DNA of 64,000 nucleotides, from contig OZ025656.1 of assembly GCA_964019335.1 (NCBI GenBank), positions 1 through 64,000 of the forward strand, in the 5' to 3' direction. The notes beneath the pieces were generated by a model. That model made no database searches and was not told where the DNA came from. It saw nothing but the letters and a program-made list of their open reading frames with translations. Source of the DNA: Diplonema japonicum. Its lineage: Eukaryota; Protista; Euglenozoa: Diplonemea. Position numbers and translations under genes: made by a program. Every line of letters begins with the position of its first letter. Within the stretch, counting starts at the first letter, position 1. Positions 1-22,858 of this stretch are shown here, piece by piece.

Positions 1-624
1 GGTTTGCGGGTTTGCGGGTTTGCGGGTTTGCGGGTTTGCGGGTTGCGGGTTTGCGGGTTTGCGGGTTTGCGGGTTTGCGGGTTTGCGGGTTTGCGGTTTG
101 CGGGTTTGCGGTTTGCGGGTTTGCGGGTTTGCGGGTTTGCGGGTTTGCGGGTTTGCGGGTTTGCGGGTTTGCGGGTTTGCGGGTTTGCGGGTTTGCGGGT
201 TTGCGGGTTTGCGGGTTTGCGGGTTTGCGGGTTTGCGGGTTTGCGGTTTGCGGGTTTGCGGTTTGCGGGTTTGCGGGTTTGCGGGTTTGCGGTTTGCGGG
301 TTTGCGGGTTTGCGGGTTTGCGGGTTTGCGGGTTTGCGGGTTTGCGGGTTTGCGGGTTTGCGGTGTTTGCGGGTTTGCGGGTTTGCGGGTTTGCGGGTTT
401 GCGGGTTTGCGGGTTTGCGGGTTTGCGGGTTTGCGGGTTTGCGGGTTTGCGGGTTTGCGGGTTTGCGGGTTTGCGGGTTTGCGGGTTTGCGGGTTTGCGG
501 GTTTGCGGGTTTGCGGGTTTGCGGGTTTGCGGGTTTGCGGGTTTGCGGGTTTGCGGGTTTGCGGGTTTGCGGGTTTGCGGGTTTGCGGGTTTGCGGGTTT
601 GCGGGTTTGCGGGTTTGCGGGTTT
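1..624 (+). repeat. (GGGTTTGC)n 8-bp tandem array, ~78 units, telomere-like or microsatellite
   Basis: Near-perfect GGGTTTGC units with occasional 7-nt GGTTTGC variants. The array runs off the left edge of the window. Confidence 0.98.
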
Positions 625-1355
625 TTTTAAAAAGGGGGACTTGAGAAAATAAATAAAAAGGGGGACTTGAGAATGTTTTTTTTTTTTTTTTTTTCTTCAA
701 AAGACACACAAGGCACGATAAATCTTAAGAGAAAATAAAAATATTCCAAAACAGACAATCAAGTTCCAACCTGGGAGGAAGGCATGGGTTTCTCTTTTTC
801 TTTATGGGAGGGAGAGGGGAAGAAGAAGAAGCAACTCCAAATGATAAAAATTCAAAAATAAAAATCTCAAAAAAGGCTTAAAAGAAGAAGAGGCAAATTC
901 AAAAACATACTAGGGAGGAATGAGTGGGGCAGGGGGTAAAATTTAGGAGGGGGAAAGAGGGAGAATCAAAAAAGGGGAAAGGGGCAGAGTGGCCAATGTC
1001 CATGCGAAAAAGCATAGAGCGGGGGAAGAAGAAAATCAAAAACAGGAAAAACACATCACCACAAAAGAAAAAAGAAAAAAAAAAAAAAAACGTCGACCGA
1101 GATGGTTCCACTTCAAAAAGAAAAAGAAAAAGAAAAACAGAAAAATAAAAAAAAAAAAAAAAAAAGGAAAAACAAAAAGAAAAAAAAAAAAAGGAAAAAA
1201 AAAAAAAAAATCTAAGTGGTTCTATCTAGCCTGGCCGTTGTAGCACCTGTTCCCTATTCTTTTATTTTTCCCTTTTTTTTTTTTCTCAGAAAAAAAAAAA
1301 AAAGTTTCACATCTTCCTATGGCGGGGGAGAACAGCCCCCCACACCCCCGCTGGC

Positions 1356-4300
1356 CTATCTGGCCAGCGAGCCTTTGGACCTCTTCTTGTGGGGTATGGG
1401 CCCCACCCGTGCCCTCCCCGACTCGAGCTGCAGCCAAGCCACCGCACTGTTCACCGGGGCCCAGTTCTCCTTGTTGCGCACCTTGACCGCGTCCCGCACC
1501 AGGTCGTCGCTCCCCAGCTCTTCCATCAACCTGTGCTCCGCCAAGAACTTGAACTGGGGCCCGGTCATCCCCTTGAGCTCACCCCTGCATATGTTGGCTT
1601 CGACCACGGTGCCATCCGCCCCCGTACCCTTCAGATAGATGTAGCCACCCTCCACACAATCCGAGTCAGTACTGGCCGATCGGGCCCGGGCCCGCTTCTT
1701 GTCCTTCTTGCTCCACTTCAGCTCTTCCAGGGTGGGGAGGTCCGTGGCAACCACCTCAGGCCGCCTCTCCCTGTCTTCCTCCTTCTTCCGGGCCAACAGC
1801 CCAAGGTACCTCTCAAAGGAGACGTCCTCGAACAACCCCGGGACCGTCACCACCGCTGACTGCAGGTCGACCTCTTCAACACCCATCTTCCGCAGATGGT
1901 CCTGGACAGTGCGCCTCGTCTCCTTCTCGCAGGGCCCCCTCCCCTCGTAGACGTCGAGGGTGACCTTCCTTCCATCCCTCACCCACGCCTTCACTTTGAT
2001 CAGGTCCTTGACCTTTCCCACTGGGGCCCTTATCCTTGCGTCGCACCTCTCCAAGAACTCACGTAGTGTCACCTTGGTAGCGCCGGCTCCCGCCGCAATG
2101 CCCACTACCCCTTCCTTCCCCGGTGTCGGGTGGTGTCTGCACCCCCGGGTCTGCAACTTGACCACCCCCCATGCCGTTTCCAGAGTCCCCTTGAGCACGC
2201 CACCCTTGAAACGAACAGGTTGCACCGCCGAACACCCACACGCGTACGTGATCTGGAAATCCTGGACCGTCCTCGGGAACTCGAACTCGCGGTATGTTTC
2301 CGACTTCTGCACCTCACAACCCACAATGCGGCTGCGGCGCTCTCCGTCCGACCCACCTTCCAAGCTTGCGAAGTACTGCTTTACCATCATGTATCCAAGT
2401 CCAGCGATACCAATCTGGCCAGCCATAGCCACCTCCAGTGGAACACCCAGCGACTCGGCCTTCGCAAGAAGCATCTCCTCAGTCCTCTCCCTTCCAGGGT
2501 CCGTTCCTTCTTCAAGGATGATCTCCACCCGGCCCTCGAACTGGATGATGAACTTGAGCAGTCGGTCCCCCGGCCTCGCCCTCAGTGGCACCATCGCTCT
2601 CGGAATTGGGATGCCCATCACCACATCAATCGGGTCAAGCTGAACGAAGTCTCCCCCTACTTCCACCTGCTGTTCCCTTTCCGGTGCCCCGACTCCCATC
2701 AGCTGATCTCCCTCCGGCGTCTGGATCCCACCCCTAGGTGTGTCAGGCCCCGACTGGCTGCCTCCGCTCGGTGCGTTCCCGCCCTCTTTGGTCCCTTCGG
2801 GGGCGTCATCCGCCTGCGGCTTCAGAGTCCTCCCACCGCCCTGTCTCTTCGCAGCTTGTTCCCTACAGAATTCGCTCACGGTCATCTTCCTCGTAGCAGT
2901 TGTCGCACTCTGGTCCCCCTTGTTCGAGTCCCTCTGGGCCTCCGTATCCCCCTTAGGACACTGGTCCAAGGTCTGGTTCACCGCAGCGTCAGTCGCCCCT
3001 TGTCTCTTCCCATCTTCCTGGGCCTTCGGGTCAAGCTCCCCTCCCTGCCCAGCCCTCTCGCTGGATCCTGTTCCGACCATCTCCGTGTCTTCTCCTCCCG
3101 GCGAGGCTGCTTCGAGTCCTGCTCCCGCTTTCCCTTGTGTTCCACCCTCCACCGGTTCCGCCTTTCGCTGCTGCTGCATTCGGGCGTCCAGGTCCTTCTT
3201 CGTCTGCTCCAGAAGGGCATCCAGCTGGTGGGCCACCGTGATTGGGGGTCCGCCTCCCTGTCCCTTCACTTCCCTCTCGGACGACTCCTCAGCTTCGGTG
3301 GTTTTTTCATTGCCGAAGGAGTCCTCTGTGAGGTCAGTGTTGGATTCAGTGTTGGGTTCGTTGTTCGCTTCCTCGTTGTCCTTTTTTTCCTCTTCGCCGT
3401 CCGGTACCGGGGGCCCTGGATCCAACTGTACAGGCCCTTTGACTAACAGCGCCCCTGCTATCGATCTCATCATGGCCGTTGACACCTCTTGGACCACACG
3501 CCTGTGTATCGAGACTCTGTCCCCGTGAGCCCGCGCAGCTATGCTCCTGGACAGTTTCTTCGTGAGGTAGACTGCTGCCTCCCCGAACCCCCCAAAGGTC
3601 TCCATCGCGAAAGGTACAAAGGCCACGCGTGTCTTGGCGAGCTCCGCCTCATACTTCTGGCGCTTGTAGTGTTCCGCCTTCGCCGCTGCGTATCCCGCAG
3701 TCTTCGCCGCCTGGTTGACACAAGACTCGTTCCTCGGGTGCACGATGACCACGTCCATAGCCATTGGGCGGGAACCCCCCACCCCACCTGGGAAGAACAC
3801 GTCCGCCGGGCGCTGGGACGACCCCGGGATCAGCCCCGTCTTCTCCATCGTTGCGCTCACCCCGGCCCACTGACAGTGTCTGTGGATGGTCTCCTTCACC
3901 CGGTCGTGCCTCGCAATCCTGGCGTTGCCGCATCCCTGGGCATGGTCACCCCATACGTCCATCCCCTCAGTCTTGCACCTCGGGTCGTGGCAGCTCTCAC
4001 CCTGCTTGTAGACCGGAGCCCCCAACCACCACTTGATCAGAGCCCCAAACTCGTTGTCCGACAGCTGGTTGTAGAAGTCAGGCGTCGCCGTCAACCACGC
4101 TCCCGCATAGTGCATTGACTCCGACATCAACCTCGCTCTCGAGCGTGCATCTGCTTTCGCCAAGAGGTCCTCCAGCGCCTTCTCATCAAGCACCCTAGAG
4201 AGCCACCTCTGGCTGCAGATGTGGGGGGCCTTGGCCACCATGTCGGGTGTAATCTGCATGCCGCCCTTCGTCCTGTTGAACCACTCGAGCCAGCTCCCCC

Positions 4301-7300
4301 ATACACCCCCTTCCAGCCCATGTTCGTATTTGGGATCCAGCTCCTTGCACAGCTTCATCGTCGACGCCCTCGAAGCCATGTTGGCCGCGCGCAGGTGCTC
4401 CTGGCAGCTCCTCATCCCAAGCCCACCGACTTTTACGGACAGTTTCGCCTGCTGCCATTCTTTCGACCCGTTCTCGAACTGCATGCCGCACACCTTCGAC
4501 ATCGTCTTCCGCACCATCTCGTCGAACCTGTGCATGACCCCTCCCACATGCGAGTCTGGGACCACTCTCATGTAAAACACCAGTTTGCTGTATGAGCTGC
4601 AATACCGGAGAAGTGTGTACCCTGTCTGCCTCCCCACCTTGGTCAGCATGTCGAAGTTCTCTTCCAGCGCGTCCAAGCGTTTGTTCAGAAAGGCTTGCGT
4701 GTACTCCGGCGATCCTATCGGCGCCCCCAGGAGCATGAAGTTCCTCTCTTTGTGGAAATTCTCTTCTGTCAGGCCATCGAAGCCTGTGTCCTCCACTGTC
4801 TGGGGGAGGTCGCCACTAACCCATATGAGCTCGCACTTCTGGGGTTTCACTTTCAGCCCTATCATTCCGCTCAGCTCACACAAGATGTTGTACGCCTTTC
4901 TCACTTCATCCACATTCCCCACAAGGACGCCATCGTCCAGGTAGAACTGGAGGATGTCCAGGTTGCAGTCTTCACTTATCTTGTTCACCAGGGGTTGGAT
5001 GGCCAGAGAGAACAGCAGCGGTCCCATCGGGTCCCCCTGTTGCACCCCTTCCTGGGACTTAATCACCTTTCCGTTGTAGTATAATTGGGAGGGCACCCTG
5101 TAGCACCAATCGGCCCACGCATACAGCCCCGACGCTTGCTCATAGGCCTGTGAGCACAGCTGCCTCCGACAAACACTGTTGAAGGCGTTGGCGTAGTCGA
5201 TCTTGAGGATCACCTTGTTTTCCTGCTTGTTGCCCCGTTCCCTGTCCACATACTGCCTGATGGTGTGTATAGCCGCCTCCATTCCAGCAGGGACCGATAC
5301 CCCCACCTGGCCGCCTTTCTTCAGGTACGAAGAGGCCACTTCCGGAGCGATCTTCTTCACAAGGGATTTCCCCACCAGCCGACGCAGCACATCCCCAACG
5401 GCTATGGGCCGCACGTCCCTGTCGTTCTTCTTGAGGGCCACAAGGTTCGCCCCTGCCATCAGCGGAGCCATCTCCCTAGGGGCCGTGCCTCTAGCTAATG
5501 CGTTGACTGCCCTCGTCACCGACATCAAACAGCCTTGAGACTCAAAAGCTCCGTCCACCGCGTCCTTGATGTGCTGGGCTCTCAGACCAGTCGGTCCCGC
5601 AGCAGTCCCCCTCGGGAAGTCCCTGATTGCGTCCAGCACTTCTTCTGGCAAGACTTCTACCGCTTCCTTCGTCTTCGCCGGGTTGTCCCATTGGGGGTGT
5701 AGTGGCTCTGGATGTTTGCTCTGCAGCGCTCTCCAGCAATCCTCATTGTCTTCTGCCAGCCCCTGGGCTACAAGCGCCGCGTTTCCTGCCGAGAACCTCC
5801 CTTTGCTGCACAGTTCCGTGGCCCTGGCGACCTTAGAGACCTCGTCGTTCTTAGGTTCCCCCTTCTCACCTGATTCCAGCTTATTCCAGAGGGCCATGTA
5901 ATTTCCCTTCTCCCACTCCTCCAATCTGGCCTGGACACTCAGCTCCGTCTCCTTGTCCCGCTTCTTCCCTCCCCTCTTCTTCCACAGGCAGGCTTTGGGG
6001 AGCATCGCCACCAGCAGCCAAGCCTCTTCTGTGTTGTCCTTCACCGCTCGGCCCAGAGTGTGCTTAAGGGTAAGCCCCCACAGTCTTTGAAGGCTCGTCG
6101 GGATCGACCCCATGGTCGTGACGTTCATGGCGGCTATGGTTTCCAGGCTGGGTAACTCGGTCCTCGTCGGGGCCGGCGGGGGGGTCGTGTATTCCCCTTC
6201 CCTTCGCACCGCCTTTTTGCACTCGTCGTGGCACCCCTGACCCTTCCACACACAGCCCCTGCACACCAGGCACCTCTCGAGGTCCAGTCTCCTCAGAACG
6301 CTCTCCGGGATCTCATCACTCTCCAGGTGCCCATCCAGGTGACACTTCCATACCCTTGTCGAGTTGAACGGGGTCGTGCTTTTGCACTTCGACCTAGCGC
6401 AGTTCGCCACCGGACAGTACAGGAATTGCTGGTTCCTTGCCCCCATCTGGTCCAACACCCCTGCCTTCCCGTATCCAGGGATCGCACGGTCTATTATGTC
6501 CCACTCCCCGATGTCCTCACCCGGGGCCTCGGAGGGTTGCTTACCTGCCTTTTGTAGAGCTACCGATTGGGACTCATCAAGGAGCATCATCATCGACTCC
6601 TCCTCTCCGACTGCATACTCGTAGTGGTTGCCGTTGTACGCCAGCACCACCACCTTCTCGTGGTCGGAGTTGTACTCCCCTATCATCAGGACTGGGTTGT
6701 TCCCCCCAGCAACCACGAGTATCGTGCGGCCAAACGCTTGTGCTGCGGCTGCCAGGCACAAGTGGTCTCCCCACGTCGCTGCTGTGCCCATCCCTTCCAA
6801 GTACCGGTCCCAACCCTCACTGCAAAACGGGGCATAGTGCTCCTCCCGGTGTTTCATCCATTCTACAACCTCGCTCCTGATGTGGGTGTGGTCGCCGTAG
6901 GCTTCCCCGAGCGAACCGGCCAGGGCGTGGAACATGCAGTTCCCGTCCTTCTCCGTCGATCTCCTCGTCAGCTTGAAGCTCTTCATGATCTCGTCCACTG
7001 ACTTGCCGGCCCTGGGTTGTTTGTCGGGGTTCCACAGATTCCGCTGCCTGTGTAGTGCACAGTGCGTCTGGTTCGACGAGCACGCCGCAGCACACGTTCC
7101 ACAGAGGTTCACCTTCATGCTCCTCGCCTGCTCTTGTTTCACAAAATGATGGTGGACCGCATTGAGGTGTTTAACTAGACAGCTTGCCACACTGGTGCGG
7201 AAAGAGCAGTCTTCCATCCGGCATTGATGTTTGTCTGATCCTTCTTTTTCCCCCTCCTTCTGCGCCTCCATGTGCTCATCATCCAAATCCATGGGGGGAG

Positions 7301-9770
7301 GGTCACCACCTCCTTGCAACGCGTCCCCTGCCAGCGTCAAGTCCGCAAAGGGGTCCAGGTGTTCGGCCTGAAAGAGCTTATCCTCCGTCTCGGCTCGTTC
7401 CTTCGCCGCTTGCTTGGCGTCTTCCTTCTTTTTTCTGCGTCTTGAGCTTCTAGGCGGGCCCAAGTACACCGGCAGGTAGTGACCTCTCGATCCGCGTCTT
7501 GTCTTCCTCAGCTTTACCGGTCCGAATCTCTGGGTCGGGTCAGCACCAGCTTTCCACACCATCACTTCCGACATGGCCCAGAGCGACATCAGCCCCCCTA
7601 TCCAAACTGAAGTGCTTCCCACCAGAGTGCCCCCTACTGCTAGCCAAGCGAGCTCCCCGGCGGACCATTCATCCCCTCGGGGCCCCACCTGTACCCTTGA
7701 CCTGCGGGTGGTCCTCCTGTCGCTCCCCGGCCTCTTCCACAACACTGCCGCATGCAGGAAGGAGGGGGCCATCCCGATGCCCGCCCCCAGCACCTGCCTC
7801 ACCCCTGGGATCAGCAAGAGGGAGACCAGGGCGACCCAGGCCCACACCCCCAGGTGCTCCCATCTCACCCCTTCCTTGCTGTGTCCCGTCCGTCTGCGGT
7901 GCCTCCTTGTGCCGGTTGCAGCCCCAGGTGCCGGGATTCTGGGTGCCAGGGGTTGGGCTCCAGGCGTTCCCACCTCGGTCCGCTTCAGCCCCATTGCAGG
8001 GTCATCTGGCTTCTGTTCCAGGGCGGCCTCGTGTTCCTCTCTGCGGGCCCTCCTCCTCCCTTCTTTCCTCGCACGACGGTGCCTTTTCTTCTCCTGTCTG
8101 GCAGCCTCCCTCGCCCCCTCCCTCGCCTTGGTCCTCTTCTCCCGACGCCTCTGAAGGGCCGTTTCGCTCCTGTGCCTCCTCCTGTTCTTCTTCCGCTTGG
8201 GCGCTGGCTTAGGTTCCCTGCCACCCATGGCAATCCAGGGGGCTCTTTTCTGTCTTCTCACAAGGGTGTGCAGTGGTGCTCTCACGTCGCTCGCAGCCTC
8301 CGCCCCAACCACACCTAGGCGGGCGGTGGGGGTGGGTGCTGGGTCCCCCTGGTTGTTTGAAAAGAAAAAAGGTTCCTCCTTGTTTGTTTTTTTTTTTTCT
8401 TTCCCTTCCACCCTCAAAAAAAGCCCCCGGCCCTTGGGGACCAGGGTGTACACCTCCGTAGAGGGTCCAGAAAAAATGGGGGGCAGAGAGGGAGGGGCAC
8501 TACCTTCTCTCGGGCGTGCTGTCTCTCCCTCTGCCTTTTTTTCCTCCGAAGAGGGTCTGTTTTTTACCTCCGTGGAGGGTTCCTCTGGAGAGGGCTCTAA
8601 AAATGAAAAAGGGGGGGACAAATGGGGGGGAGGAGCACCACCCTCTCTCGGGAGTGCCACCTCTTCCCCTTTCTCTCTATTTTCCTCCGAAGAGGGTCTG
8701 TTTTCCTCCGAAGAGGGTTCTAAAAAAAAAAGGGGGGCGGGTGGGGCACTATCCTCTCTTGGGAGTGCCACCCCCCCTTGCCCACAAAAAAGGGGATCTA
8801 AAAAAGGGGGTTCGTCTGTTAACCCAGGGGATGGGTCTTCCTGGGGTGTGCGGGTGAGCTTGGGGCCTACCGCACGCAGGGTGATCGACACCCTGACACC
8901 AGTGGACATCCCGGACGGGATGTGGTGCGTCCACTGGTGTCTCGCTTCACCTTCCAACAATGCCCATGAGAAGGGGGGCACCAGGTATTTCGCCACCCTG
9001 TCCCCCCTCCTCATGACCATTGTGGTCTCGGCTCCGTACGAGAGGACTAGGACAATCGGTCCCAGCCTCGCGTCGTCCTTGTGGGCGGCAATCCCACAAC
9101 CAGACTTGTACTTGTTGACAAGTACCTGGTTGGGGACCACCTCGAGCCCTGCGGCGGCGGCCACCTCCCTCACCCACCCCTCCGCCCCCCCTGGGATCCC
9201 CGTGGTGGGGCGCACCTTGGCGTTCGTCCCCTCCCACCGGTACCCGTATTGGAGGGTCTCCCTCCCTGAGTTCCCAGACAGGGCCTCCCACTTTCCTGAA
9301 AGCAGGGCTTTCGGGAAGGCAGGGGCCGGGCCCGTCCTCAACCCGGGAGGGTGTTCACCATACACCAGTACCCACCCCTTTTTTTCTCCCTCTTTTCTTC
9401 CCTCTTCAACAATAGCAGGGTCGGCTGCAGGGGTCGTGGTCGCGGCGGTCGTGGCTGCGGCAGGGGCGGCTGCGGCGGTCTCAGTTGCGGCGATTAGGGC
9501 GGCAGGGTCGGCTGCGGCGTTCAGGGTGGCTGGGGCGGCCGTGGTTGTAGCAGCGGCGGTCAAAACCGCGGTCTCTGTGCCCAACCAGATTGCCTGGTTT
9601 TTATGTTTTTTATTATTTTTGACGACATCTAGAGGGGATCTAAGGGGAGGGGAGGGGTCATACTGCCCGGCCAGATTTCGGTCTGGTCGGGTGGTCGGCT
9701 TGGTCGGCGTCTCTCGTAGGCGTTCCTCCTGCGGGCGGCGGTCTCCGACGACGTTTCGTCTAGGGTCCAT
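1356..9770 (-). CDS. Retrotransposon polyprotein, 2804 aa from the first ATG: AlkB dioxygenase, zinc fingers, OTU, RT, RLE, C-terminal repeats
   Basis: AlkB (~8870-9265): NQVLVNKY..GIAAHKDD...WTHHI...RVSITLR. C2H2 (~7150-7225): CRMEDC..HLNAVH. OTU (~6615-6960): DGNCMF..WGD..NHYE. RT (~4710-5640): RPIAVGD, KIDYANAFNS, QQGDP, FYLDD, LLGAPIG. CCHC plus RLE (~3580-3995): RHD, RPAD, MDV, K..KY, FVPFAMETFG. The ATG at 9770 follows an A-tract. Confidence 0.93.
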   Translation of the reverse strand: MDPRRNVVGDRRPQEERLRETPTKPTTRPDRNLAGQYDPSPPLRSPLDVVKNNKKHKNQAIWLGTETAVLTAAATTTAAPATLNAAADPAALIAATETAAAAPAAATTAATTTPAADPAIVEEGRKEGEKKGWVLVYGEHPPGLRTGPAPAFPKALLSGKWEALSGNSGRETLQYGYRWEGTNAKVRPTTGIPGGAEGWVREVAAAAGLEVVPNQVLVNKYKSGCGIAAHKDDARLGPIVLVLSYGAETTMVMRRGDRVAKYLVPPFSWALLEGEARHQWTHHIPSGMSTGVRVSITLRAVGPKLTRTPQEDPSPGLTDEPPFLDPLFCGQGGVALPREDSAPPAPLFFLEPSSEENRPSSEENREKGEEVALPREGGAPPPHLSPPFSFLEPSPEEPSTEVKNRPSSEEKKAEGETARPREGSAPPSLPPIFSGPSTEVYTLVPKGRGLFLRVEGKEKKKTNKEEPFFFSNNQGDPAPTPTARLGVVGAEAASDVRAPLHTLVRRQKRAPWIAMGGREPKPAPKRKKNRRRHRSETALQRRREKRTKAREGAREAARQEKKRHRRARKEGRRRARREEHEAALEQKPDDPAMGLKRTEVGTPGAQPLAPRIPAPGAATGTRRHRRRTGHSKEGVRWEHLGVWAWVALVSLLLIPGVRQVLGAGIGMAPSFLHAAVLWKRPGSDRRTTRRSRVQVGPRGDEWSAGELAWLAVGGTLVGSTSVWIGGLMSLWAMSEVMVWKAGADPTQRFGPVKLRKTRRGSRGHYLPVYLGPPRSSRRRKKKEDAKQAAKERAETEDKLFQAEHLDPFADLTLAGDALQGGGDPPPMDLDDEHMEAQKEGEKEGSDKHQCRMEDCSFRTSVASCLVKHLNAVHHHFVKQEQARSMKVNLCGTCAAACSSNQTHCALHRQRNLWNPDKQPRAGKSVDEIMKSFKLTRRSTEKDGNCMFHALAGSLGEAYGDHTHIRSEVVEWMKHREEHYAPFCSEGWDRYLEGMGTAATWGDHLCLAAAAQAFGRTILVVAGGNNPVLMIGEYNSDHEKVVVLAYNGNHYEYAVGEEESMMMLLDESQSVALQKAGKQPSEAPGEDIGEWDIIDRAIPGYGKAGVLDQMGARNQQFLYCPVANCARSKCKSTTPFNSTRVWKCHLDGHLESDEIPESVLRRLDLERCLVCRGCVWKGQGCHDECKKAVRREGEYTTPPPAPTRTELPSLETIAAMNVTTMGSIPTSLQRLWGLTLKHTLGRAVKDNTEEAWLLVAMLPKACLWKKRGGKKRDKETELSVQARLEEWEKGNYMALWNKLESGEKGEPKNDEVSKVARATELCSKGRFSAGNAALVAQGLAEDNEDCWRALQSKHPEPLHPQWDNPAKTKEAVEVLPEEVLDAIRDFPRGTAAGPTGLRAQHIKDAVDGAFESQGCLMSVTRAVNALARGTAPREMAPLMAGANLVALKKNDRDVRPIAVGDVLRRLVGKSLVKKIAPEVASSYLKKGGQVGVSVPAGMEAAIHTIRQYVDRERGNKQENKVILKIDYANAFNSVCRRQLCSQAYEQASGLYAWADWCYRVPSQLYYNGKVIKSQEGVQQGDPMGPLLFSLAIQPLVNKISEDCNLDILQFYLDDGVLVGNVDEVRKAYNILCELSGMIGLKVKPQKCELIWVSGDLPQTVEDTGFDGLTEENFHKERNFMLLGAPIGSPEYTQAFLNKRLDALEENFDMLTKVGRQTGYTLLRYCSSYSKLVFYMRVVPDSHVGGVMHRFDEMVRKTMSKVCGMQFENGSKEWQQAKLSVKVGGLGMRSCQEHLRAANMASRASTMKLCKELDPKYEHGLEGGVWGSWLEWFNRTKGGMQITPDMVAKAPHICSQRWLSRVLDEKALEDLLAKADARSRARLMSESMHYAGAWLTATPDFYNQLSDNEFGALIKWWLGAPVYKQGESCHDPRCKTEGMDVWGDHAQGCGNARIARHDRVKETIHRHCQWAGVSATMEKTGLIPGSSQRPADVFFPGGVGGSRPMAMDVVIVHPRNESCVNQAAKTAGYAAAKAEHYKRQKYEAELAKTRVAFVPFAMETFGGFGEAAVYLTKKLSRSIAARAHGDRVSIHRRVVQEVSTAMMRSIAGALLVKGPVQLDPGPPVPDGEEEKKDNEEANNEPNTESNTDLTEDSFGNEKTTEAEESSEREVKGQGGGPPITVAHQLDALLEQTKKDLDARMQQQRKAEPVEGGTQGKAGAGLEAASPGGEDTEMVGTGSSERAGQGGELDPKAQEDGKRQGATDAAVNQTLDQCPKGDTEAQRDSNKGDQSATTATRKMTVSEFCREQAAKRQGGGRTLKPQADDAPEGTKEGGNAPSGGSQSGPDTPRGGIQTPEGDQLMGVGAPEREQQVEVGGDFVQLDPIDVVMGIPIPRAMVPLRARPGDRLLKFIIQFEGRVEIILEEGTDPGRERTEEMLLAKAESLGVPLEVAMAGQIGIAGLGYMMVKQYFASLEGGSDGERRSRIVGCEVQKSETYREFEFPRTVQDFQITYACGCSAVQPVRFKGGVLKGTLETAWGVVKLQTRGCRHHPTPGKEGVVGIAAGAGATKVTLREFLERCDARIRAPVGKVKDLIKVKAWVRDGRKVTLDVYEGRGPCEKETRRTVQDHLRKMGVEEVDLQSAVVTVPGLFEDVSFERYLGLLARKKEEDRERRPEVVATDLPTLEELKWSKKDKKRARARSASTDSDCVEGGYIYLKGTGADGTVVEANICRGELKGMTGPQFKFLAEHRLMEELGSDDLVRDAVKVRNKENWAPVNSAVAWLQLESGRARVGPIPHKKRSKGSLAR

Positions 9771-9913
9771 TTTTTTTTTTTTTTTTTTTTTGTGTTGAGG
9801 GGGGAGGGGATCCTTTGCTAAACGGCAGGCGGGCCGGGCCGAAACAACCCCCCCAGACGACGACGAACGGACACCGAGCGGACGCAGCAGGCACCAACAA
9901 AAACACAGACGAC

Positions 9914-9952
9914 CAATAAAGTACAGAAACTGTAGCTTTAGAATCGTTGGTT
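9914..9952 (-). other. Complete 39-nt spliced-leader exon at the 5' end of the long element
   Basis: Minus strand reads AACCAACGATTCTAAAGCTACAGTTTCTGTACTTTATTG. It matches the euglenozoan SL pattern (39 nt, AAC start, CAGTTTCTGTACT core, ATTG end) and is near-identical to the Diplonema SL as I recall it. Confidence 0.92.
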
Positions 9953-10974
9953 GCACAGAAGAAGCAACTCCAAATGATAAAAATTCAAAAATAAAAATCT
10001 CAAAAAAGGCTTAAAAGAAGAAGAGGCAAATTCAAAAACATACTAGGGAGGAATGAGTGGGGCAGGGGGTAAAATTTAGGAGGGGGAGGGAGAATCAAAA
10101 AAGGGGAAAGGGGCAGAGTGACCAATGTCCATGCGAAAAAGCATAGAGCGGGGGAAGAAGAAAATCAAAAACAGGAAAAACACATCACCACAAAAGAAAA
10201 AAGAAAAAAAAAAAAAAAAAAACGTCGACCGAGATGGTTCCACTTCAAAAAGAAAAAGAAAAAGAAAAACAGAAAAATAAAAAAAAAAAAAAAGGAAAAA
10301 CAAAAAGAAAAAAAAAAAAGGAAAAAAAAAAAAAATCTAAGTGGTTCTATCTAGCCTGGCCGTTGTAGCACCTGTTCCCTATTCTTTTATTTTTCCCTTT
10401 TTTTTTTTTCTCAGAAAAAAAAAAAAAAAAGTTTCACATCTTCCTATGGCGGGGGGGGGGGGGAGAACAGCCCCCCACACCCCCGCTGGCCTATCTGGCC
10501 AGCGAGCCTTTGGACCTCTTCTTGTGGGGTATGGGCCCCACCCGTGCCCTCCCCGACTCGAGCTGCAGCCAAGCCACCGCACTGTTCACCGGGGCCCAGT
10601 TCTCCTTGTTGCGCACCTTGACCGTGTCCCGCACCAGGTCGTCGCTCCCCAGCTCTTCCATCAACCTGTGCTCCGCCAAGAACTTGAACTGGGGCCCGGT
10701 CATCCCCTTGAGCTCACCCCTGCATATGTTGGCTTCGACCACGGTGCCATCCGCCCCCGTACCCTTCAGATAGATGTAGCCACCCTCCACACAATCCGAG
10801 TCAGTACTGGCCGATCGGGCCCGGGCCCGCTTCTTGTCCGGGGAGGGGATCCTTTCGGTAAGCGGCGGGCAGGCCGACGGGCAAAACAACCCCCCCGGAC
10901 GACGGCGACGACGGACGACGGACGCAGCAGCAAACCCAGGCAGAGGCGGCAGGCACCAGCAGAACACGAACGAC

Positions 10975-11013
10975 CAATAAAGTACAGAAACTGTAGCTTT
11001 AGAATCGTTGGTT
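10975..11013 (-). other. Second complete 39-nt SL exon (5' end of the short element)
   Basis: Identical to 9914-9952 and also followed by GTCG. Confidence 0.92.
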
Positions 11014-11015
11014 GC

Positions 11016-11042
11016 ACAGAAACTGTAGCTTTAGAATCGTTG
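11016..11042 (-). other. Partial SL duplicate (SL nt 4-30) upstream of the full SL
   Basis: Minus strand reads CAACGATTCTAAAGCTACAGTTTCTGT, then GC, then the full SL. Confidence 0.9.
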
Positions 11043-11076
11043 TTTGCGGGTTTGCGGGGTTTGCGGGTTTGCGGGT
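11043..11076 (+). repeat. Residual (GGGTTTGC)n, ~4 units, on the far side of the element pair
   Basis: tttgcgggtttgcggggtttgcgggtttgcgggt, in the same orientation as 1-624. Confidence 0.95.
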
Positions 11077-11639
11077 CTGCTCATCCCCTTGAGCTCACCT
11101 TACTATTACTAGGCCAAGTATAGGTACCCTTAGTGAAAAAATATTTTGTTCTGAGGTAAAATATCACTTTTCAGGTGTTTTTGACCACTTTTTTGTGAAA
11201 AAATTTTTCTTTGGGCACTTTTTTTGTGAGGAAAAACAATTTTTTTGGACACTATATTTTTTTTTTTCCAGCACCCCATGCACCAAACCTTACCTTACAG
11301 AAGGGTTCCACGTGCCCAAGCTTCCACTTGCTTGTGGGTGCGAGTCTATTTTTCACCTTCGGTAGGTAATCTTGCAGAGCATGGCTTTACAGCAAAGCAA
11401 ACGACAGCTTGAGAAGGAGCGCTCAAGTATGTGTGCAACATTTGTACTTGTATTGATGTAAATATTGTGATGAGTGTGTGGCATGATTGAAGAAATTATG
11501 GATCAAGAAAAAACCTAGATCCGATAGTCAGGCGACAGTGGCTGGGTATGTTTTCATGGTACTTCTTCTCTCGGTATAAAACACAGGTAGTTTAACGTCT
11601 TATCTAGGACTCTATATTCACTCCCTCACCCTCTGTCTT

Positions 11640-12045
11640 CTATGCTAGTTGGTCAAAGCGTCTGCAGTACTTCATCTCCCTGCACACCTATGAAGATGAA
11701 GTTATAGGCACTGAGTCTTCTAAAGATGACTTGGAACTCACCCTTTCAAGACAAAGCAGGAGCAGTTCTGGCTGATAGGTTTAAAACACTGAAGTAGCAC
11801 TGGTTCAGATACACCACCGAGCAGTTATGATGCCTACTTTTGCTGAAGAGGTTCACGTAGTCATCTTGCTTCTTGTCCAGCATGATGTCGTCAAGCACCA
11901 CAAGGTTCTGTTTGTCTGAGTCGAAGGCGTCCATGTCCAGGTCAGCCACATCGGTGTGGAGCTCGATGGTTGGTGAGAGCTGCTCGTCAAGGATGTCTAT
12001 GGCTTCTTCCACCTTGTTCTTCCCCTTCAGTCGATGACATACATG
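11640..12045 (-). pseudogene. Decayed A32/FtsK-HerA-type viral DNA packaging ATPase fragment (Polinton/virophage/NCLDV-like)
   Basis: Walker B LVVLDD, then NLFSKSRHHNCSVVYLNQCYFSV. Frameshifted continuations read KPISQNCSCFVLK, EF..YNFIFI and RRFDQL. No Walker A is visible. Confidence 0.72.
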
Positions 12046-13094
12046 TTTTGTTGGCTAGCCCCTCCTGTAGGTATGTGTTTTGTCTTGATTGTCTGTAAGA
12101 GTCGCGGTTGTTGTGTAGCTTTAGAATTGTTGCGCTGGGCATTCTAGCGGGTTTTTTTTGGGTGCAGGGTCTGGTCCGGGGGGGGGGGGGGGGGGGGGGG
12201 GGGTTAGGAGGACTGCGGACTCAGAATGAGAGGGGTTAGGGACGAATCGCTCAGGGGTGGGGTAGGTCGGGGTGCCACGTTTCGTGGGGTCCGCTTCGCT
12301 AAAGGAAAAAGTGCCTCGACAGTCAACTAGATCATCCAGCCACCACCCATCACGTGAACGTTCTTTTCTCCTTTTTTTTTTTTTTTTTTAATTCAGTATT
12401 TCTCGAAAAACGTCATGAGATTCTTGGGTAAAACAATAAATTGAATCTACTTCATCCACTGTCCCCTCTGATAGTCATGCATGAGCTTGCAGTTCCTTTC
12501 AGCCATGTACAACGCATTTCCACCTGGATTTTGCCACTCCGGCTTGTACTGTATTGTCGCTAAGCATGCACCTACCTGTGGAACTGGGGCTTCTCATGGT
12601 TGAATCTGGTGGTGAATTAAAGCAGCACGTGGTTATCAAAAGAAATGAAATAGAAAAGGGGGAAAAGGGAGGTGCAGAAAGGGGTGGATAACAATAGGGA
12701 AATAGGAAGCACTACATTTCCGAAAGCTGATATCATTCCGATACCAAAAAAGGGTGAACAACCTTTGAAAAAGTGTGGTGCAGATCTAACAAATGGAGGG
12801 TTTGGGCACATGTGGAGACTAAAGTGTGAAGGACAGGCACTTATCTACAGCGCCGGTCTCTTAGCCTGTAACGTTGGGGTGCTCATGCCCCAGCGCCTAG
12901 AAGGAGAACCGTTTTGGTGGAAAGGGGGGTAAAAATATCTAAGGGACTCTTCATTACAAATAAAAAAAAAAAGAAAATAACAGACCACATCGTTGGAGAG
13001 GGAAAATGAAAGGCGAAAGACTCTGAATGACGGCAGAAGTGTTAGCAACAACCCTCAAAAAGATTCTTTTCGTGTTTCTCTAAGGTATTGCTGC

Positions 13095-14118
13095 TCAGAC
13101 CAACGAGGAGACACGGCACCTCTTCTCCTCGCTGAACCTTTTAACTGTTGCCTGCAGGTTTCCAGACTTAATAGTTTTGGCGTTTGAGACAAGCTTGGCG
13201 GACAGTTCCTGTGGTGTTGTTCGAAAGACACAATGCTAGATACCTCAATGTCATTAAGTGAGTACGTGCAAAGGGACGCCAAACACTCAGGCCACACAGG
13301 CTCTTGCTCAGTGATGGTGCGAGCTGCGTGGACAGCGGAGGCCCCAAGCAATGACGGCTGTGTGATGAACTAATTAAAATACTTGTCCATACCACATGTT
13401 CCAGGTACAGCTTCAGGTTCAGCATCGCGCACTCAGAAAGGAAGACTGTCGCATGGCGAAGCTTCTTTGCATCCGCGTTCTCCGGGACACCAGGCTCCTT
13501 CAACTCGATCAGATATCTGGAGATGAAGCTGAAAGGGGTGGGAGTGGTGAGTGTGTAGTTCAAAGCGTGCAAAATAGAATGCTCGTATCTCAACATGTCC
13601 TCCTGAGCGAAGGCGTCGGCAGAGATGTGGATGAATTCCTTGATGGAAGGTGGGTAGATCTCCTCGTACTTGGAGGCAATGATGAGGGACACCATGGTCA
13701 CAAGCTGCATCCTCTTCCTTTGGATGGGCTTGATGGCAAGGAACCTGTCTAGTACATTTGCTGTGAGAAACAACGTCTCAGGAGCCATCTTGAACCTGTT
13801 GGCACACTCGATGATCCAGTCGAGGCACACAGCACGCATCTCAGATGTAAGCTCCGGCTGTGTGGTCATGTAGGTGGTAGACGGGAGCAGTAGGGACTCT
13901 GTCTTCATAAAGTGTCCCATGATGTCGTCCACGTAGTCCCTGGCCTCCATGTCGGCCCTGGGGTTCACTACCGTCTTGTCTTTGCTCTCCAGCCTAGGGC
14001 TGATAGCACCGCTCTGCTCGTGCTTAATGTCCTGCAGAGACCCCTTCTTGCCTCCCATGCCACCGACATTGCCAAGGTCACCCAAAACCTGCCTCCCCTT
14101 GCTTGCGATCTTCGCCAT
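13095..14118 (-). CDS. Mitotic (A/B-type) cyclin, 3 exons
   Basis: Cyclin box MRAVCLDWIIE..ETLFLTANVLDRFL..IIASKYEEIYPP. Introns 13358-13392 and 13209-13243 (35 nt each) restore PSLLGASAV and the C-terminal ATVKRFS. Confidence 0.9.
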
Positions 14119-14442
14119 TTTAACGTGGAAGAGGGAACTGTATTTAATGAAGCTTGGCAACTATAAAAGCGCATAAATACGGAGCGAAGAAACAGAACAT
14201 AGCGAAATGGGAAGGCAGAACACTAGCGAAGGAAAGAAGACACACGAGAATCGTCGGATAAGCACACAGTTATATTTGGTCATTCTTTCATTCTAACTCT
14301 CAACTAAAACCCCAGCCAAAGCAGAAATTGACAGAGGTGTTTAACTAAGCTCTTACTACCGACACCTGAAAACAGAACCAGTTTGGTTCAATCAATACAT
14401 TCTTTTTTTTTTTCTTCTTCTTTTTTTCCCTAGTGTTTAATT

Positions 14443-20954: not shown

Positions 20955-22858
20955 TTAATTGTTGAGTTCCGTGCAGAATTGCTGTGTTTCTTTATACGTT
21001 GCTTGCTTGCATACCATCAACTCGAGCTTCAAGGTCTCCAGGGATTTATCGCATGTCCTAGGCGGTGTGGGCGGCTTGGGCGCGTTTACAGCCGCAGACA
21101 GCGCACGAGGGACCTTCGCAGATGTCCTTTTCGTCAGATTCTCGTACACGGCGGTCACGTCATAGGTGCCAAGCGAAGGCGCTGTCTTCCCGTCGAGACC
21201 CTGAAGCGTGTGAACTGTAGTAGTGAGCATACCTCCTTCACTGCGTCTGGGAACTTGGCGAAGCTGGCGGTCGACGCTAACAAAATCGGGATCACGTCTG
21301 TTTTTTTCTTGTAGTCATTCATAACCTTGTAGGCCACTGCCGTATGGGTATCCAAGAGATAACTGTTGCCTTCCTGCACAGCTTTGATTGTCGCCAGGCA
21401 TTCTGCCTCTGTACAGAAACCCGCAGTGAAGTCCTCCTGCAACTTTGCAAATAACTCTTGAGGCAGCTCAAAGAAGCCCTTGCTGTCCAGATCAGCCATG
21501 AGGCCCTTCACAACCTCCGTATCCCCGTCACAGAGGAGGAACAAGAAGCGCTCTACGTTGGAAGACTTGAGGATGTCAATGCTAGGCGAAGCCGTGAGCT
21601 TGAGCCCACGCGACCTTGTGTCGTACACGCCAGTGGTGATGAAGTCAGTCAGGACGTTGTTTTCGTTCGATGCGCACACAAACCTCCTGACAGGTAAGCC
21701 TGCGGCTTTCGCGAAGTAAGCGCTGAGGATGTTCCCGAAGTTACCTGTGGGCACCACTACATCCACTTTGTCACCCACTTTGATGACCTTCTTGCCTAGC
21801 AGTTGGCAGTACCCGTAAATGTAGTATACGATTTGCGGCAAGAGCCTTCCCCAGTTGATGGAGTTTGCCGATGACAGCACAGAGTTGGCCCCCTTAAGCA
21901 GAGTTGCTTTGTATTCGCCGTCATTGAAGATCTGTTTCACTGAAGTCTGGCAGAAGTCGAAGTCGGCATCAACACCGAGCACACGGACGTTGCCACCTTC
22001 GCATGCCAGCATCTGCGCCTTCTGCACTGCACTCACACCGTCCTTCGGGTACAGCACCATGACAGCAATGCCCTGCTCTTGCATGAAGCCACTAATTGCT
22101 GCAACACCAGTGTCGCCACTCGTTGCTGCCAGAATTACATACTGTGACTTTTCATTGGTCACAGATTTGGTAAAGAACTTGGGGAACAGCTGCAGCGCGA
22201 AGTCTTTGAAGGCTGCAGTAGGTCCATGGAAGAGCTCCAGAACGTGGACGTTGTCCTCAACATTCGTGATAGGGCACACACTGGAGGCTTCCCACCGCTC
22301 AGGGGAATAGGCCTTGGCAATAAGTTCCTTGAGCTCTTGTGGGCTGATTGTCAGTCCCGGTGAATATTGGATGAATGACTCGAGAACATGTTGTGCTGTA
22401 TTTACGTAAGAGAGGCCAGAGAGGTACTCAAAGTCCGACGAAGTGAAGGAAGGGATTGACTGCGGCATGAATAGGCCACCGTCGGCGGCGATACCCTTGC
22501 GCACCACCGAAAGGAAGTCATGCCCTTCGCCACCAGCACCCCGCGTCGATCTGAACCATCTTGAGAATGATAACCTCTTTGCTACTCTGTCTTCGACTGA
22601 CGCATCCCCCTCGCCTTCCCATCTCATCACTTTCACGTCGTAGGTCTGTTCGTATGTAACATTTACTTCGCAGCCGGCTACATAGACAACAGGACCCCCG
22701 TACTCTTTCAGGGTCGTCAGATCAATTTCTCCTTCCACCTCCACAACAGCGTCTGCCAATCCCTTCTTCACAGCAGTGTGCTTGACGTACTGCTTACCTA
22801 ATTTCTTCGCAAGGCCCTCGGCCACTTTCGTGTATCCTACAAGAAATACGTTCGTCAT
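20955..22858 (-). CDS. Threonine synthase (class II / THNSL1-like) with an N-terminal extension
   Basis: GIAADGGLF, LELFHGPTAAFKDFAL (PLP lysine), ATSGDTG, SANSINWGRL, VPTGNFGN. Introns 21201-21232 and probably 20982-21014. Confidence 0.92.

Follow-up and report, generated by a model that had tools for sequence, protein, structure and literature searches.

The start of contig C9 (C9:1-64000), a chromosome end of the marine protist Diplonema japonicum, raises the question of how the host's spliced leader (SL) came to be encoded at the head of a retrotransposon that lies in a terminal repeat. The window, as the whole 64,000-nucleotide stretch analyzed is called here, was originally predicted to hold an element that either carries the SL as a portable 5' module while targeting the repeat or lives in the SL array and reached the repeat through retrotransposition of an SL-initiated transcript. 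The evidence below makes another reading probable, in which the element is a chromosome-end-specific REL-type (CRE/SLACS/MoTeR-type) non-LTR retrotransposon templated by a trans-spliced, polyadenylated RNA. A leader at the start of the DNA copies suggests that finished mRNA was copied back into chromosome ends.

Layout of the locus

Read inward from the terminus, the locus consists of octamers, a full element on the minus strand, an SL-headed short unit, a partial SL, and 4.8 further octamers. The full element and short unit had been described as lying head-to-tail between octamer tracts, and all features of that description are present, with slight corrections to some coordinates. The full 39-nt SL said to start both units is exact at 9914-9952 and 10975-11013. 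SL and octamer matches in the window are not expected by chance, as 100 shuffles produced 0 matches. Features are listed by coordinates and strand, with the basis of the call in brackets where one applies.

1..624, plus: terminal octamer array (GGGTTTGC)n, 78.6 units, 97% match (TRF)
625..9952, minus: full element, 9.3 kb, from poly(A) end to SL end
625..631, minus: A7 tail of the full element, abutting CCCGCAAA (sequence)
632..1355, minus: 3' UTR of the full element, with two 26-nt terminal repeats, CTCAAGTCCCCCTTTTTATTTATTTT
1356..9770, minus: intact full-element ORF of 2,804 codons, ATG at 9768-9770 and stop at 1356-1358 (translation)
9771..9913, minus: subfamily A 5' UTR, opening with GTCGTCTGTG immediately 3' of the SL
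9914..9952, minus: full 39-nt SL, the first bases of the full element (exact match)
9953..9956, minus: 4-nt filler, GTGC on the sense strand, between the short-unit 3' UTR and the full-element SL (alignment end points, sequence)
9957..11013, minus: SL-headed short unit, 1.06 kb
9957..10839, minus: 3' part of the short unit, comprising the last ~115 codons and a shortened 3' UTR without poly(A) (blastn)
10840..10974, minus: subfamily B 5' UTR, joined to the 3' part of the short unit
10930..10937: single inverted octamer unit inside that subfamily B 5' UTR
10975..11013, minus: whole 39-nt SL at the head of the short unit (exact match)
11014..11042, minus: filler GC (11014-11015) and partial SL nt 4-30 (11016-11042), upstream of the whole SL (32-nt tandem repeat, sequence)
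11043..11080, plus: proximal octamer remnant, 4.8 units, oriented like the terminal array (tandem-repeat analysis)
11081..11099, minus: 19-nt exact piece of the element ORF (= 1565-1583), just inside the proximal octamers (blastn)

On the sense strand of the element, the terminal array reads (CCCGCAAA)n and heads to the chromosome end. The genomic SL RNA genes have an exon identical to the SL that heads the full element. The octamers do keep the same register on both sides of the pair at this locus, as had been noted, with the proximal tract ending in ...CCCGCAAA and the distal tract opening with CCCGCAAA after the A-run. This shared register is weak evidence, because the poly(A) masks the exact 3' boundary and other copies have other 5' phases. 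The 19-nt piece of ORF at 11081-11099 is probably the remnant of an older truncated copy capped by octamers, since 3'-truncated elements at other places in the genome are likewise capped by octamer arrays.

The short unit had been taken for a derivative of its full neighbor, a description that suits only its 3' portion. It shares 97% identity with the full copy (824-1704) over its 3' 883 nt, and its 3' UTR ends ~200 nt before the normal end. The SL and 5' UTR, 80% identical to those of the full element, come from a second subfamily (B), for which a separate ORF start exists elsewhere in the genome. The deletion junction, where CCCCTCCCC meets GGACAAG, is unique among the loci examined. Judged by these alignments, the short unit is an A/B chimera and no simple derivative of the neighboring full copy.

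The element protein and its family at chromosome ends

The ORF stays open in frame through the SL, giving a 2,866-codon frame from 9956. Pfam and motif comparisons place in order an AlkB-like 2OG-Fe(II) oxygenase domain with an intact HxD/H/RxxxxxR motif, a low-complexity linker, C2H2-like fingers, an OTU protease (DGNC...H), a reverse transcriptase (RT; RVT_1 at E = 3e-16), an endonuclease, a disordered linker, and an orphan C-terminus. The YxDD box of the RT, whose only solved relatives are R2 proteins, is present as YLDD at residue 1672 of the 2,866-codon frame (1610 counted from the first ATG). All endonuclease motifs follow the RT in order, as C-X4-C-X10-H-X3-C-X6-RHD-X19-E-X10-RPAD-X15-D; this order agrees with the SLACS/CRE consensus, whereas the CCHC spacers and RPAD deviate from it (PMC12857005). 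Pfam detected no endonuclease/exonuclease/phosphatase (APE) domain in the element protein. The predicted identity as a non-LTR element with an RT and a restriction-like endonuclease is upheld by a motif order like that of SLACS, CRE, and MoTeR and by the best named match, "SLACS 132 kDa protein [D. papillatum]" (45% identity over 58% of the query). On these sequence grounds the element is a member of the REL-type group with a SLACS/CRE/MoTeR-type endonuclease.

The orphan C-terminal domain, about 430 aa long (434 aa), had no match in Pfam or the atlas, an exhaustive representative search returned only the element's own family, and single-sequence structure prediction gave no usable model (pLDDT 36.7). 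No long homologues of the AlkB-OTU N-terminal region were found in a search limited by length to long sequences, and no relatives were confirmed in JGI metagenome contigs. A literature search found no report of an AlkB-OTU pairing within a retrotransposon polyprotein, the setting in which the pairing is shown here.

At least 48 RT copies were scored in the genome, 99 to 100% identical in protein. RT-region matches at left ends comprise 22 loci, 22/22 on the minus strand, and the 21 plus-strand loci are all at high coordinates, with the right-end position checked for those on contigs of known length. The orientation rule is broken at only three loci, and there is one interior locus (C30). Searches with the 5' end and with the 3' end agree with this picture of terminal, oriented copies. 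The family thus lies at dozens of chromosome ends with its sense strand toward the terminus and colinear with the C-rich (CCCGCAAA)n, in one orientation and essentially only in or next to the terminal repeat, the habit of MoTeR/FoTeR/Cnl1-type elements. In other copies, poly(A) tails of 2 to over 60 A are joined mostly to CCCGCAAA. Copies truncated at the 5' end and joined to octamers were seen in independent runs, and the 26-nt repeat CTCAAGTCCCCCTTTTTATTTATTTT varies from 1 to 17 copies per element across the family.

The octamer in which the element had been placed proved to be the terminal repeat of the assembly's contigs, present at contig starts on the plus strand and at contig ends on the minus strand; TTAGGG x4 occurs nowhere in the genome. 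Octamer arrays also cap elements truncated at independent internal points, so that the repeat both occupies physical ends and caps broken sequence, as a telomere repeat does, and the genome contains a TERT-like ORF that has RBD and RT domains. The plus strand reads GGGTTTGC at contig starts and GCAAACCC at contig ends, and therefore the C/A-rich strand heads to the end, unlike a telomerase repeat, in which the G-rich strand runs 5' to 3' toward the terminus. The polarity of the octamer array is inverted for a telomere, an unusual chromosome-end architecture, and as a result the 3' end of the element faces the terminus, not the 5' end as in MoTeR/FoTeR. A literature search for the octamer returned only primer noise, and the D. 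japonicum genome note makes no mention of telomeres, transposons, or SL (PMC13598402).

Origin of the spliced-leader heads

Tabulating heads genome-wide bore out the claim that the SL belongs to the DNA copies and is inherited with them. Each of the 23 intact 5' ends has an exact SL-5'UTR junction (23/23), and a genome search for an SL-less master copy, in the form of the 5' UTR preceded by non-SL sequence, gave 0 matches. The genome contains 195 SL copies. Among 47 distinct retro-copies, SL nt 1 is heterogeneous (A26/T8/C9/G4) and nt 5-39 are almost invariant. Heads of the form SL+TTTCTGTACTTTATTG, joined via the AG at SL nt 22-23, number 7 genome-wide, two of them from the element's family; an internal AG at SL nt 16-17 is used in 1 further head, and one element copy has the SL joined after an AG at 5'UTR position 139. 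To judge from these joins, AG-relic heads are fresh SLs spliced into the older encoded SL of read-through transcripts. The marks of SL-relic retro-copies are therefore present, namely, a DNA-encoded SL, variable poly(A), and internal-AG relics (7 + 1).

From these patterns we infer that the SL was copied from the 5' end of an RNA and became the heritable head of every copy. Variable poly(A), 5'-truncated copies, and the heterogeneity at SL nt 1 argue for an RNA template, and the AG-relic heads argue for trans-splicing onto transcripts of SL-headed copies. The host genes for cyclin and threonine synthase, which begin 13 kb inward on the minus strand, the same strand as the element, are consistent with the proposed direction of read-through. 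Upstream units cut within their own 3' UTRs (in the window and at L013 and L018), SL fragments between poly(A) and SL or octamers (L004, L037, and L045), and the A/B chimera point to template switching or deletion at 5' junctions.

Under this model, the element would be transcribed terminus-ward by read-through from the inward host gene cluster on the same strand, and its RNA would be trans-spliced and polyadenylated as any mRNA. The endonuclease would nick the G-rich strand at GGGTTT^GC, a site read from junctions only, and a T-run would prime on the poly(A), with the RT copying the RNA as far as its capped SL 5' end. The cDNA end could then join upstream DNA by A/AA microhomology, likewise read only from junctions, in a reaction that would often delete leftover proximal octamers and part of the older neighbor or follow an RNA-to-RNA template switch. 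The expected outcome would be head-to-tail stacks with no octamers between units, 3' UTRs cut short in the upstream unit, filler nucleotides, stuttered pieces of SL, and small chimeric units, of which the short unit is an example.

A possible, if somewhat unlikely, alternative is that the SL in the DNA works as a portable 5' module, with transcription or 5'-end formation at SL nt 1 of the DNA copy and no need for trans-splicing; an internal initiator, like that of some SL RNA genes, or processing at an upstream poly(A) site would supply the end. The universal SL on intact 5' ends, the lack of an SL-less source copy, and the reading frame open across the SL all agree with such a module. Relic double heads, which the copied-template route predicts, are also rare (8 versus 195 SL copies) and far outnumbered by clean single heads, which are preceded by at least 8 different upstream contexts and so arose repeatedly. 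Because the boundary TTATTG/GTCG has no AG acceptor, a clean head could not be regenerated from SL-headed copies by ordinary trans-splicing, which counts against the copied-template model. However, nothing in the upstream flanks of retro-copies resembles the conserved flank of SL RNA genes, the 5' region has no significant structure (a fold for an anti-SL hairpin or other 5' structure was no better than shuffles, z = -0.36), and AG-relic heads show fresh SLs added to read-through transcripts. The copied 5' end of a trans-spliced, polyadenylated template appears to fit the data better than a functional portable module, which concerns how the clean head is inherited and is compatible with the copied-template explanation for the head's origin.

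Near-identity among copies and tandem units of 10.66 kb (C24) and 6.02 kb (C99) indicate that recombination or duplication between ends also spreads copies. It is unlikely that the arrays stem mainly from recombination, break-induced replication, and segmental duplication of a few old insertions, in a family now not retrotransposing. The tandem units and the identical compound junctions on separate contigs (L017/L025) would suit such a history, and 99 to 100% identity could reflect homogenization, but the copies differ widely in poly(A) length, in the 3' junction, in 5' context, and in the point of 5' truncation, and the window copy has its uninterrupted 2,804-codon ORF and intact catalytic motifs. 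Quite doubtful is a wider proposal in which the SL head would let copies make leader RNA without normal trans-splicing, the AlkB-like dioxygenase would remove base methyl groups from the cap-proximal SL nucleotides and thus allow the RT to reach the first base of the leader, and inverted octamers and element arrays would jointly buffer or maintain the ends.

That the window junctions are an assembly chimera of repeated terminal sequences is very improbable. The region is multi-copy sequence, and the read data, Logan unitigs, are short and stop at repeat borders, with none listed that bridges 9956/9957. The source assembly is nonetheless described as HiFi plus Hi-C with a QV of 59 (PMC13598402), and no part of the structure is more than 11.1 kb from unique sequence, a distance that a single HiFi read could span. 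The same junction classes occur at dozens of contig ends, and 53 to 83% of the window's words were found in runs from three studies.

Elements of the SLACS/CRE/CZAR type target SL genes; an insertion of the SLACS kind interrupts the SL internally, at a constant position, and does not put the whole SL at the element's 5' end. Genuine SL RNA genes in D. japonicum read ...GGTCCGGGAGGTT, SL, GTACCCAATC... with a conserved upstream flank, and the element reads SL followed by GTCGTCTGTG, which ruled out an SL intron behind the element's SL (the real intron being GTACCCAATC). Site-specific insertion in SL RNA genes, a CRE-clade trait, was not found. The predicted SL-array resident, driven by the SL promoter like CRE1/SLACS/CZAR and leaving telomeric copies as secondary retro-copies of an SL-initiated transcript, would match the SLACS annotation of the best named match and relatives listed as site-specific (PMC12857005), but for this assembly it can be dismissed as extremely improbable: the SL RNA genes keep an intact exon, intron, and upstream flank, no copy lies inside one and no element 5' UTR occurs in SL-gene context, all 23 junctions are of the telomeric type, and the whole SL stands at the element's 5' end.

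Comparison with known systems

Carlavirus-type replicases also combine an AlkB-like dioxygenase with an OTU protease, again within the polyprotein of a replicator that uses an RNA template (PMC6364481, PMC3689765); they are plant RNA virus enzymes, and the comparison covers those two domains. Oriented non-LTR arrays at chromosome ends are known from HeT-A/TART/TAHRE in Drosophila and SART1/TRAS1 in Bombyx, the latter described as nicking the telomeric repeat site-specifically (PMC5537684, PMC7265360). These telomeric LINEs belong to APE-type or jockey-type clades and have no spliced leader, unlike the D. japonicum element. The Drosophila elements fully replace telomerase repeats, whereas in D. 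japonicum a TERT-like gene and repeat arrays coexist with the element.

Dinoflagellate retrogenes carry a DNA-encoded DinoSL, and their re-expression splices a new leader to an AG in the old one, leaving a truncated relic (PMC5585692, PMC6050394, PMC12014239). The D. japonicum copies share the DNA-encoded leader at the 5' end of a retro-copied mRNA and the internal-AG relics. The dinoflagellate case concerns cellular genes copied in trans, whereas the D. japonicum leader stands at the head of a retrotransposon family that is autonomous, has relics only as exceptions, and keeps to chromosome ends. In diplonemids, the encoded leader serves as a natural tag of retro-copied RNA, through which retrogene formation, RT template switching, and chromosome-end turnover can be read from the genome. 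It also raises a testable question, namely, how the next clean leader-headed RNA arises from a copy that already carries the leader in DNA.

MoTeR1/MoTeR2 (Magnaporthe), FoTeR (Fusarium), and Cnl1 (Cryptococcus) resemble the D. japonicum element in an RT followed by a CCHC/RHD/E/R(P)AD/D-E endonuclease, in single-orientation insertion into a terminal repeat with the sense strand colinear with the C-rich strand, in head-to-tail arrays with shortened companions that have common ends, and in asymmetric junctions suggesting target-primed reverse transcription (PMC12857005). They point the 5' end at the terminus (PMC12857005), whereas the D. japonicum element points its 3' end there, the octamer array being inverted. 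Their heads are telomere-like repeats; no 5' end at the terminus with telomere-like variant repeats was found in the D. japonicum family, in which the 5' end is the host SL. The D. japonicum element further differs in its real poly(A) tail and in an ORF more than twice as long, which adds the AlkB-like, OTU, and orphan C-terminal domains.

CRE1/CRE2, SLACS, and CZAR share with the element a euglenozoan host, REL-type motifs, and a tie to SL sequence. Their insertions break up SL RNA genes at one set internal position and do not begin with a whole SL, whereas in D. japonicum the SL genes are untouched and the SL forms the element's own first 39 nt at chromosome ends. The two target habits of the CRE/SLACS/MoTeR group, SL genes and telomeres, are thereby tied to one family in a free-living euglenozoan, and a plain reason is suggested for the association with the leader: the template appears to be a mature trans-spliced mRNA.

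Layout of the element pair

The assembly comprises 62.5 Mb in 132 contigs, and the window is the opening 64 kb of contig C9. The published genome of D. japonicum YPF1604, assembled from HiFi plus Hi-C data, has 62.3 Mb in 118 chromosomes, and the paper makes no mention of telomeres, transposons, or the leader (PMC13598402). All element features in the window are carried on the minus strand, including copies of the 39-nt host spliced leader (SL; AACCAACGATTCTAAAGCTACAGTTTCTGTACTTTATTG), and are bordered by an 8-nt repeat (the octamer) that also terminates other contigs.

Features of the element pair and its flanking repeats
1-624, plus strand: octamer array at the window start, 78.6 units of GGGTTTGC
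625-631, minus strand: A7 tail of the full element
632-1355, minus strand: 3' UTR of the full element
1356-1358, minus strand: stop codon of the full element
9768-9770, minus strand: first ATG of the full-element ORF (frame open through the SL, 2,866 codons)
9771-9913, minus strand: 5' UTR of the full element
9914-9952, minus strand: complete SL of the full element
9953-9956, minus strand: filler GTGC
9957-11013, minus strand: short unit, with its own SL at 10975-11013
11014-11015, minus strand: filler GC
11016-11042, minus strand: partial SL (nt 4-30)
11043-11080: octamers, 4.8 units
11081-11099, minus strand: exact 19-nt fragment of the element ORF

Because SL and octamer occurrences in the window are far above chance expectation, the original prediction of an SL-headed pair in an octamer repeat stands as an observation, with the SL of the full element starting at 9952 rather than 9956 and with a short unit that is a chimera. 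Over its 3' 883 nt, the short unit matches the full copy at 97% identity. In its SL and 5' UTR, identity drops to 80%, and this part is that of a second subfamily (B, versus A for the full element) whose own ORF start is present elsewhere in the genome. Unitig word depth of the element versus unique flank was ~50-110x in two DNA-like runs; coverage in a third run was uneven and RNA-like. The read data are short unitigs that break at repeat borders, and the window junctions are given as assembled. The comparison set consisted of the window and 73 genomic loci.

Several smaller features accompany the pair. The subfamily B 5' UTR contains one exact octamer (window 10930-10937) oriented opposite to the flanking arrays, so that the sense RNA reads GGGTTTGC, the complement of the outward-running strand. 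This unit, also present in L002, L009, L017, L030, L042, and L059 and located in a segment absent from subfamily A, may be a chance match or a captured repeat. At the extreme 3' end of the element (3' UTR, window 632-690, and copies L032 to L057), a 26-nt unit, CTCAAGTCCCCCTTTTTATTTATTTT, varies from 1 to 17 copies among otherwise near-identical elements. Farther inside, an 88-codon ORF (11749-12012, minus strand) weakly resembles a poxvirus A32/Polinton-type packaging ATPase (Pox_A32 E = 3.7e-4, under the curated cutoff); a degenerate SL fragment beside a G26 run (12113-12133, minus strand) lies ~100 nt upstream in the sense direction, and the ORF could represent part of a virus-like gene that was retro-copied. 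An uninterrupted ORF of 8,592 codons (27364-53142, minus strand) has Laminin_G_3, Laminin_G_2, and pentraxin-like domains in its N-terminal half, and thus belongs to a very large gene for a secreted or surface-type protein, 27 kb inside the chromosome end.

Element protein and origin of the leader

Pfam domains in the element protein occur in the order AlkB-type 2OG-Fe(II) oxygenase (HxD, distal H, and RxxxxxR all present), OTU protease (DGNC and the downstream H both present), and RVT_1. C-terminal to the reverse transcriptase (RT) is the series C-X4-C-X10-H-X3-C-X6-RHD-X19-E-X10-RPAD-X15-D. Its motif order is that of the restriction-like endonuclease (REL) of SLACS/CRE and MoTeR/FoTeR (PMC12857005), although the CCHC spacers differ and RPAD replaces their R/KPD or RAD. 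Among named relatives, the best is a D. papillatum protein carrying the annotation "SLACS 132 kDa protein," followed by hundreds of unnamed protist and animal RT proteins at 30-37% identity. Relatives of solved structure were only R2 proteins, over the RT portion only, and a search of 1.84 billion representatives returned no homologues of the last ~430 residues outside the family. The putative CRE-like placement is based on motifs and one annotation. Purely as a hypothesis, the AlkB-like domain could strip cap-proximal base methylations and thereby make the leader copyable.

Genuine SL RNA genes read ...GGTCCGGGAGGTT/SL/GTACCCAATCTGATCC... and end in a T-run terminator, with some paired at ~350 bp spacing. 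The element instead reads SL/GTCGTCTGTG, a junction with 23 exact copies, and a genome search found no element 5' UTR without the SL. For this assembly, these findings rule out the alternative that the element is an SL-array resident. Evidence for an RNA template comes from poly(A) tails of 2 to over 60 A, followed mostly by CCCGCAAA; from 5'-truncated copies joined to octamers in runs of separate studies; and from variability at SL nt 1 (A26/T8/C9/G4 in 47 distinct retro-copied leaders, with nt 5-39 practically invariant), as expected if RT runs off or misreads a capped first nucleotide. The element leader would then be the copied end of an RNA rather than part of an SL gene.

Transcripts of SL-headed copies also appear to receive fresh leaders, as suggested by relic heads, in which a fresh SL is joined at an AG inside an older encoded SL, and by one copy whose SL is attached just past the sole 5' UTR AG. 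Relic SL+TTTCTGTACTTTATTG heads (AG at SL nt 22-23) number 7 genome-wide, 2 of them in the element family, and one further head uses the AG at SL nt 16-17. Against these 8, the genome has 195 SL copies, so that single clean heads are far commoner; the TTATTG/GTCG boundary has no AG, and there is no SL-less master. Ordinary trans-splicing therefore cannot fully explain how the clean head is inherited. Clean heads could arise if transcription started internally, at the encoded SL, if 5' ends formed at the upstream poly(A) site, or if duplicated SL segments collapsed while the RNA was being reverse transcribed. No significant fold was seen in the 5' region.

SL heads also occur elsewhere. At L063 (C2:150567), an SL copy whose first bases are TACC is followed by the SL RNA intron (GTACCCAATC...), and the unrelated upstream flank opens with a long A-run; this locus looks like a retro-copy of unspliced SL RNA itself. 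Several other SL-headed families (L062 to L073) are dispersed away from chromosome ends and continue GTATCGACCGTGCCAATAAAG..., GTGGTGG..., or otherwise, usually preceded by T-runs; in some of them, the head is closely followed by CAATAAAG, which is complementary to the 3' end of the SL.

Octamer arrays and chromosome ends

The octamer lies on the plus strand at contig starts and on the minus strand at contig ends (C1:1-384, C4:1-328, C3:999806-999965, window 1-624), and the genome contains no TTAGGG arrays. Octamers directly cap elements cut at independent internal points, with cuts within the OTU domain and at 190 nt and 90 nt of the ORF, and thus act as an end-healing repeat. This suggests that broken or eroded ends are healed by octamer addition. 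At C41:533-536 kb lies a TERT-like ORF that encodes both telomerase domains, RBD and RT. Capped truncated elements were seen at L017 (C44 right end), L025 (C2 right end), L041 (C75 left end), and L024 (C30:~335 kb), the last apparently inside its contig and possibly an interstitial telomere or old fusion. Healing junctions mostly have A, AA, or AAA directly before CCCGC, and the 104 canonical octamer units at the left end of C36 (L021) are followed directly on their inner side by a 10-nt variant repeat, (CCCGCACAAA)n.

The polarity of the terminal octamers is inverted for a telomere, since the terminus carries the 5' end of the G-rich strand, and the outward direction is 5' to 3' on the C/A-rich strand, (CCCGCAAA)n. 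To our knowledge, every known telomerase-made telomere has the opposite polarity.

For the RT region, the scored copies number at least 48, and their proteins are 99-100% identical. All 22 RT loci <14 kb from a contig start are on the minus strand, and all 21 on the plus strand are at high coordinates, with three loci violating the orientation rule; separate mapping of element 5' and 3' ends gave a matching picture. The sense strand therefore heads toward the chromosome end, colinear with (CCCGCAAA)n. Host genes for cyclin (13171-14160) and threonine synthase (21158-22858) share the element's strand, so end-directed read-through would be sense.

Proposed stack formation and known systems

Directly upstream of most SL heads in the family, another unit terminates with its 3' end and oligo(A), with octamers absent between, and others follow unrelated sequences that likewise end in A-runs. 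At three heads, including the window's full copy, the upstream unit is cut within its 3' UTR. SL 5'-part fragments stutter between poly(A) and SL or octamers (L004, L037, L045, and window 11016-11042). The simplest account, which we infer from these junction sequences, has five steps. The endonuclease would nick the G-rich strand at GGGTTT^GC, the T-run would base-pair with poly(A), and RT would copy the RNA up to the SL 5' end. The cDNA end (TT opposite the leader's AA) would then join the C-rich strand at its next A-run, often at the cost of whatever proximal octamers remained and of part of the neighboring older unit, or would first switch to another SL-bearing RNA. Repeated insertions into the terminal tract would stack outward. 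The distal full copy would be younger than the short unit, and its arrival would have deleted the last ~200 nt and tail of that unit. The short unit itself would be an A/B copy-choice product, with a deletion junction unique among the loci compared. Recombination between ends also contributes to stacks, as seen in tandem units of 10.66 kb and 6.02 kb and in identical compound junctions on different contigs.

The feature is real and well defined: a REL-type retrotransposon associated with a telomere repeat, in which the host SL is inherited by the copies. MoTeR/FoTeR elements have their 5' end toward the terminus (PMC12857005), so that their sense strand is the C-rich strand. Orientation relative to the repeat strand is equal in the Diplonema element, but its 3' end points outward, because the octamer array is inverted. 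Its relic heads show the relict-leader pattern of dinoflagellate retrogenes. The element resembles telomeric elements of the MoTeR/FoTeR kind, relatives of the SLACS kind, and leader relics as in dinoflagellates, and is unusual in its accessory domains and chromosome-end setting.
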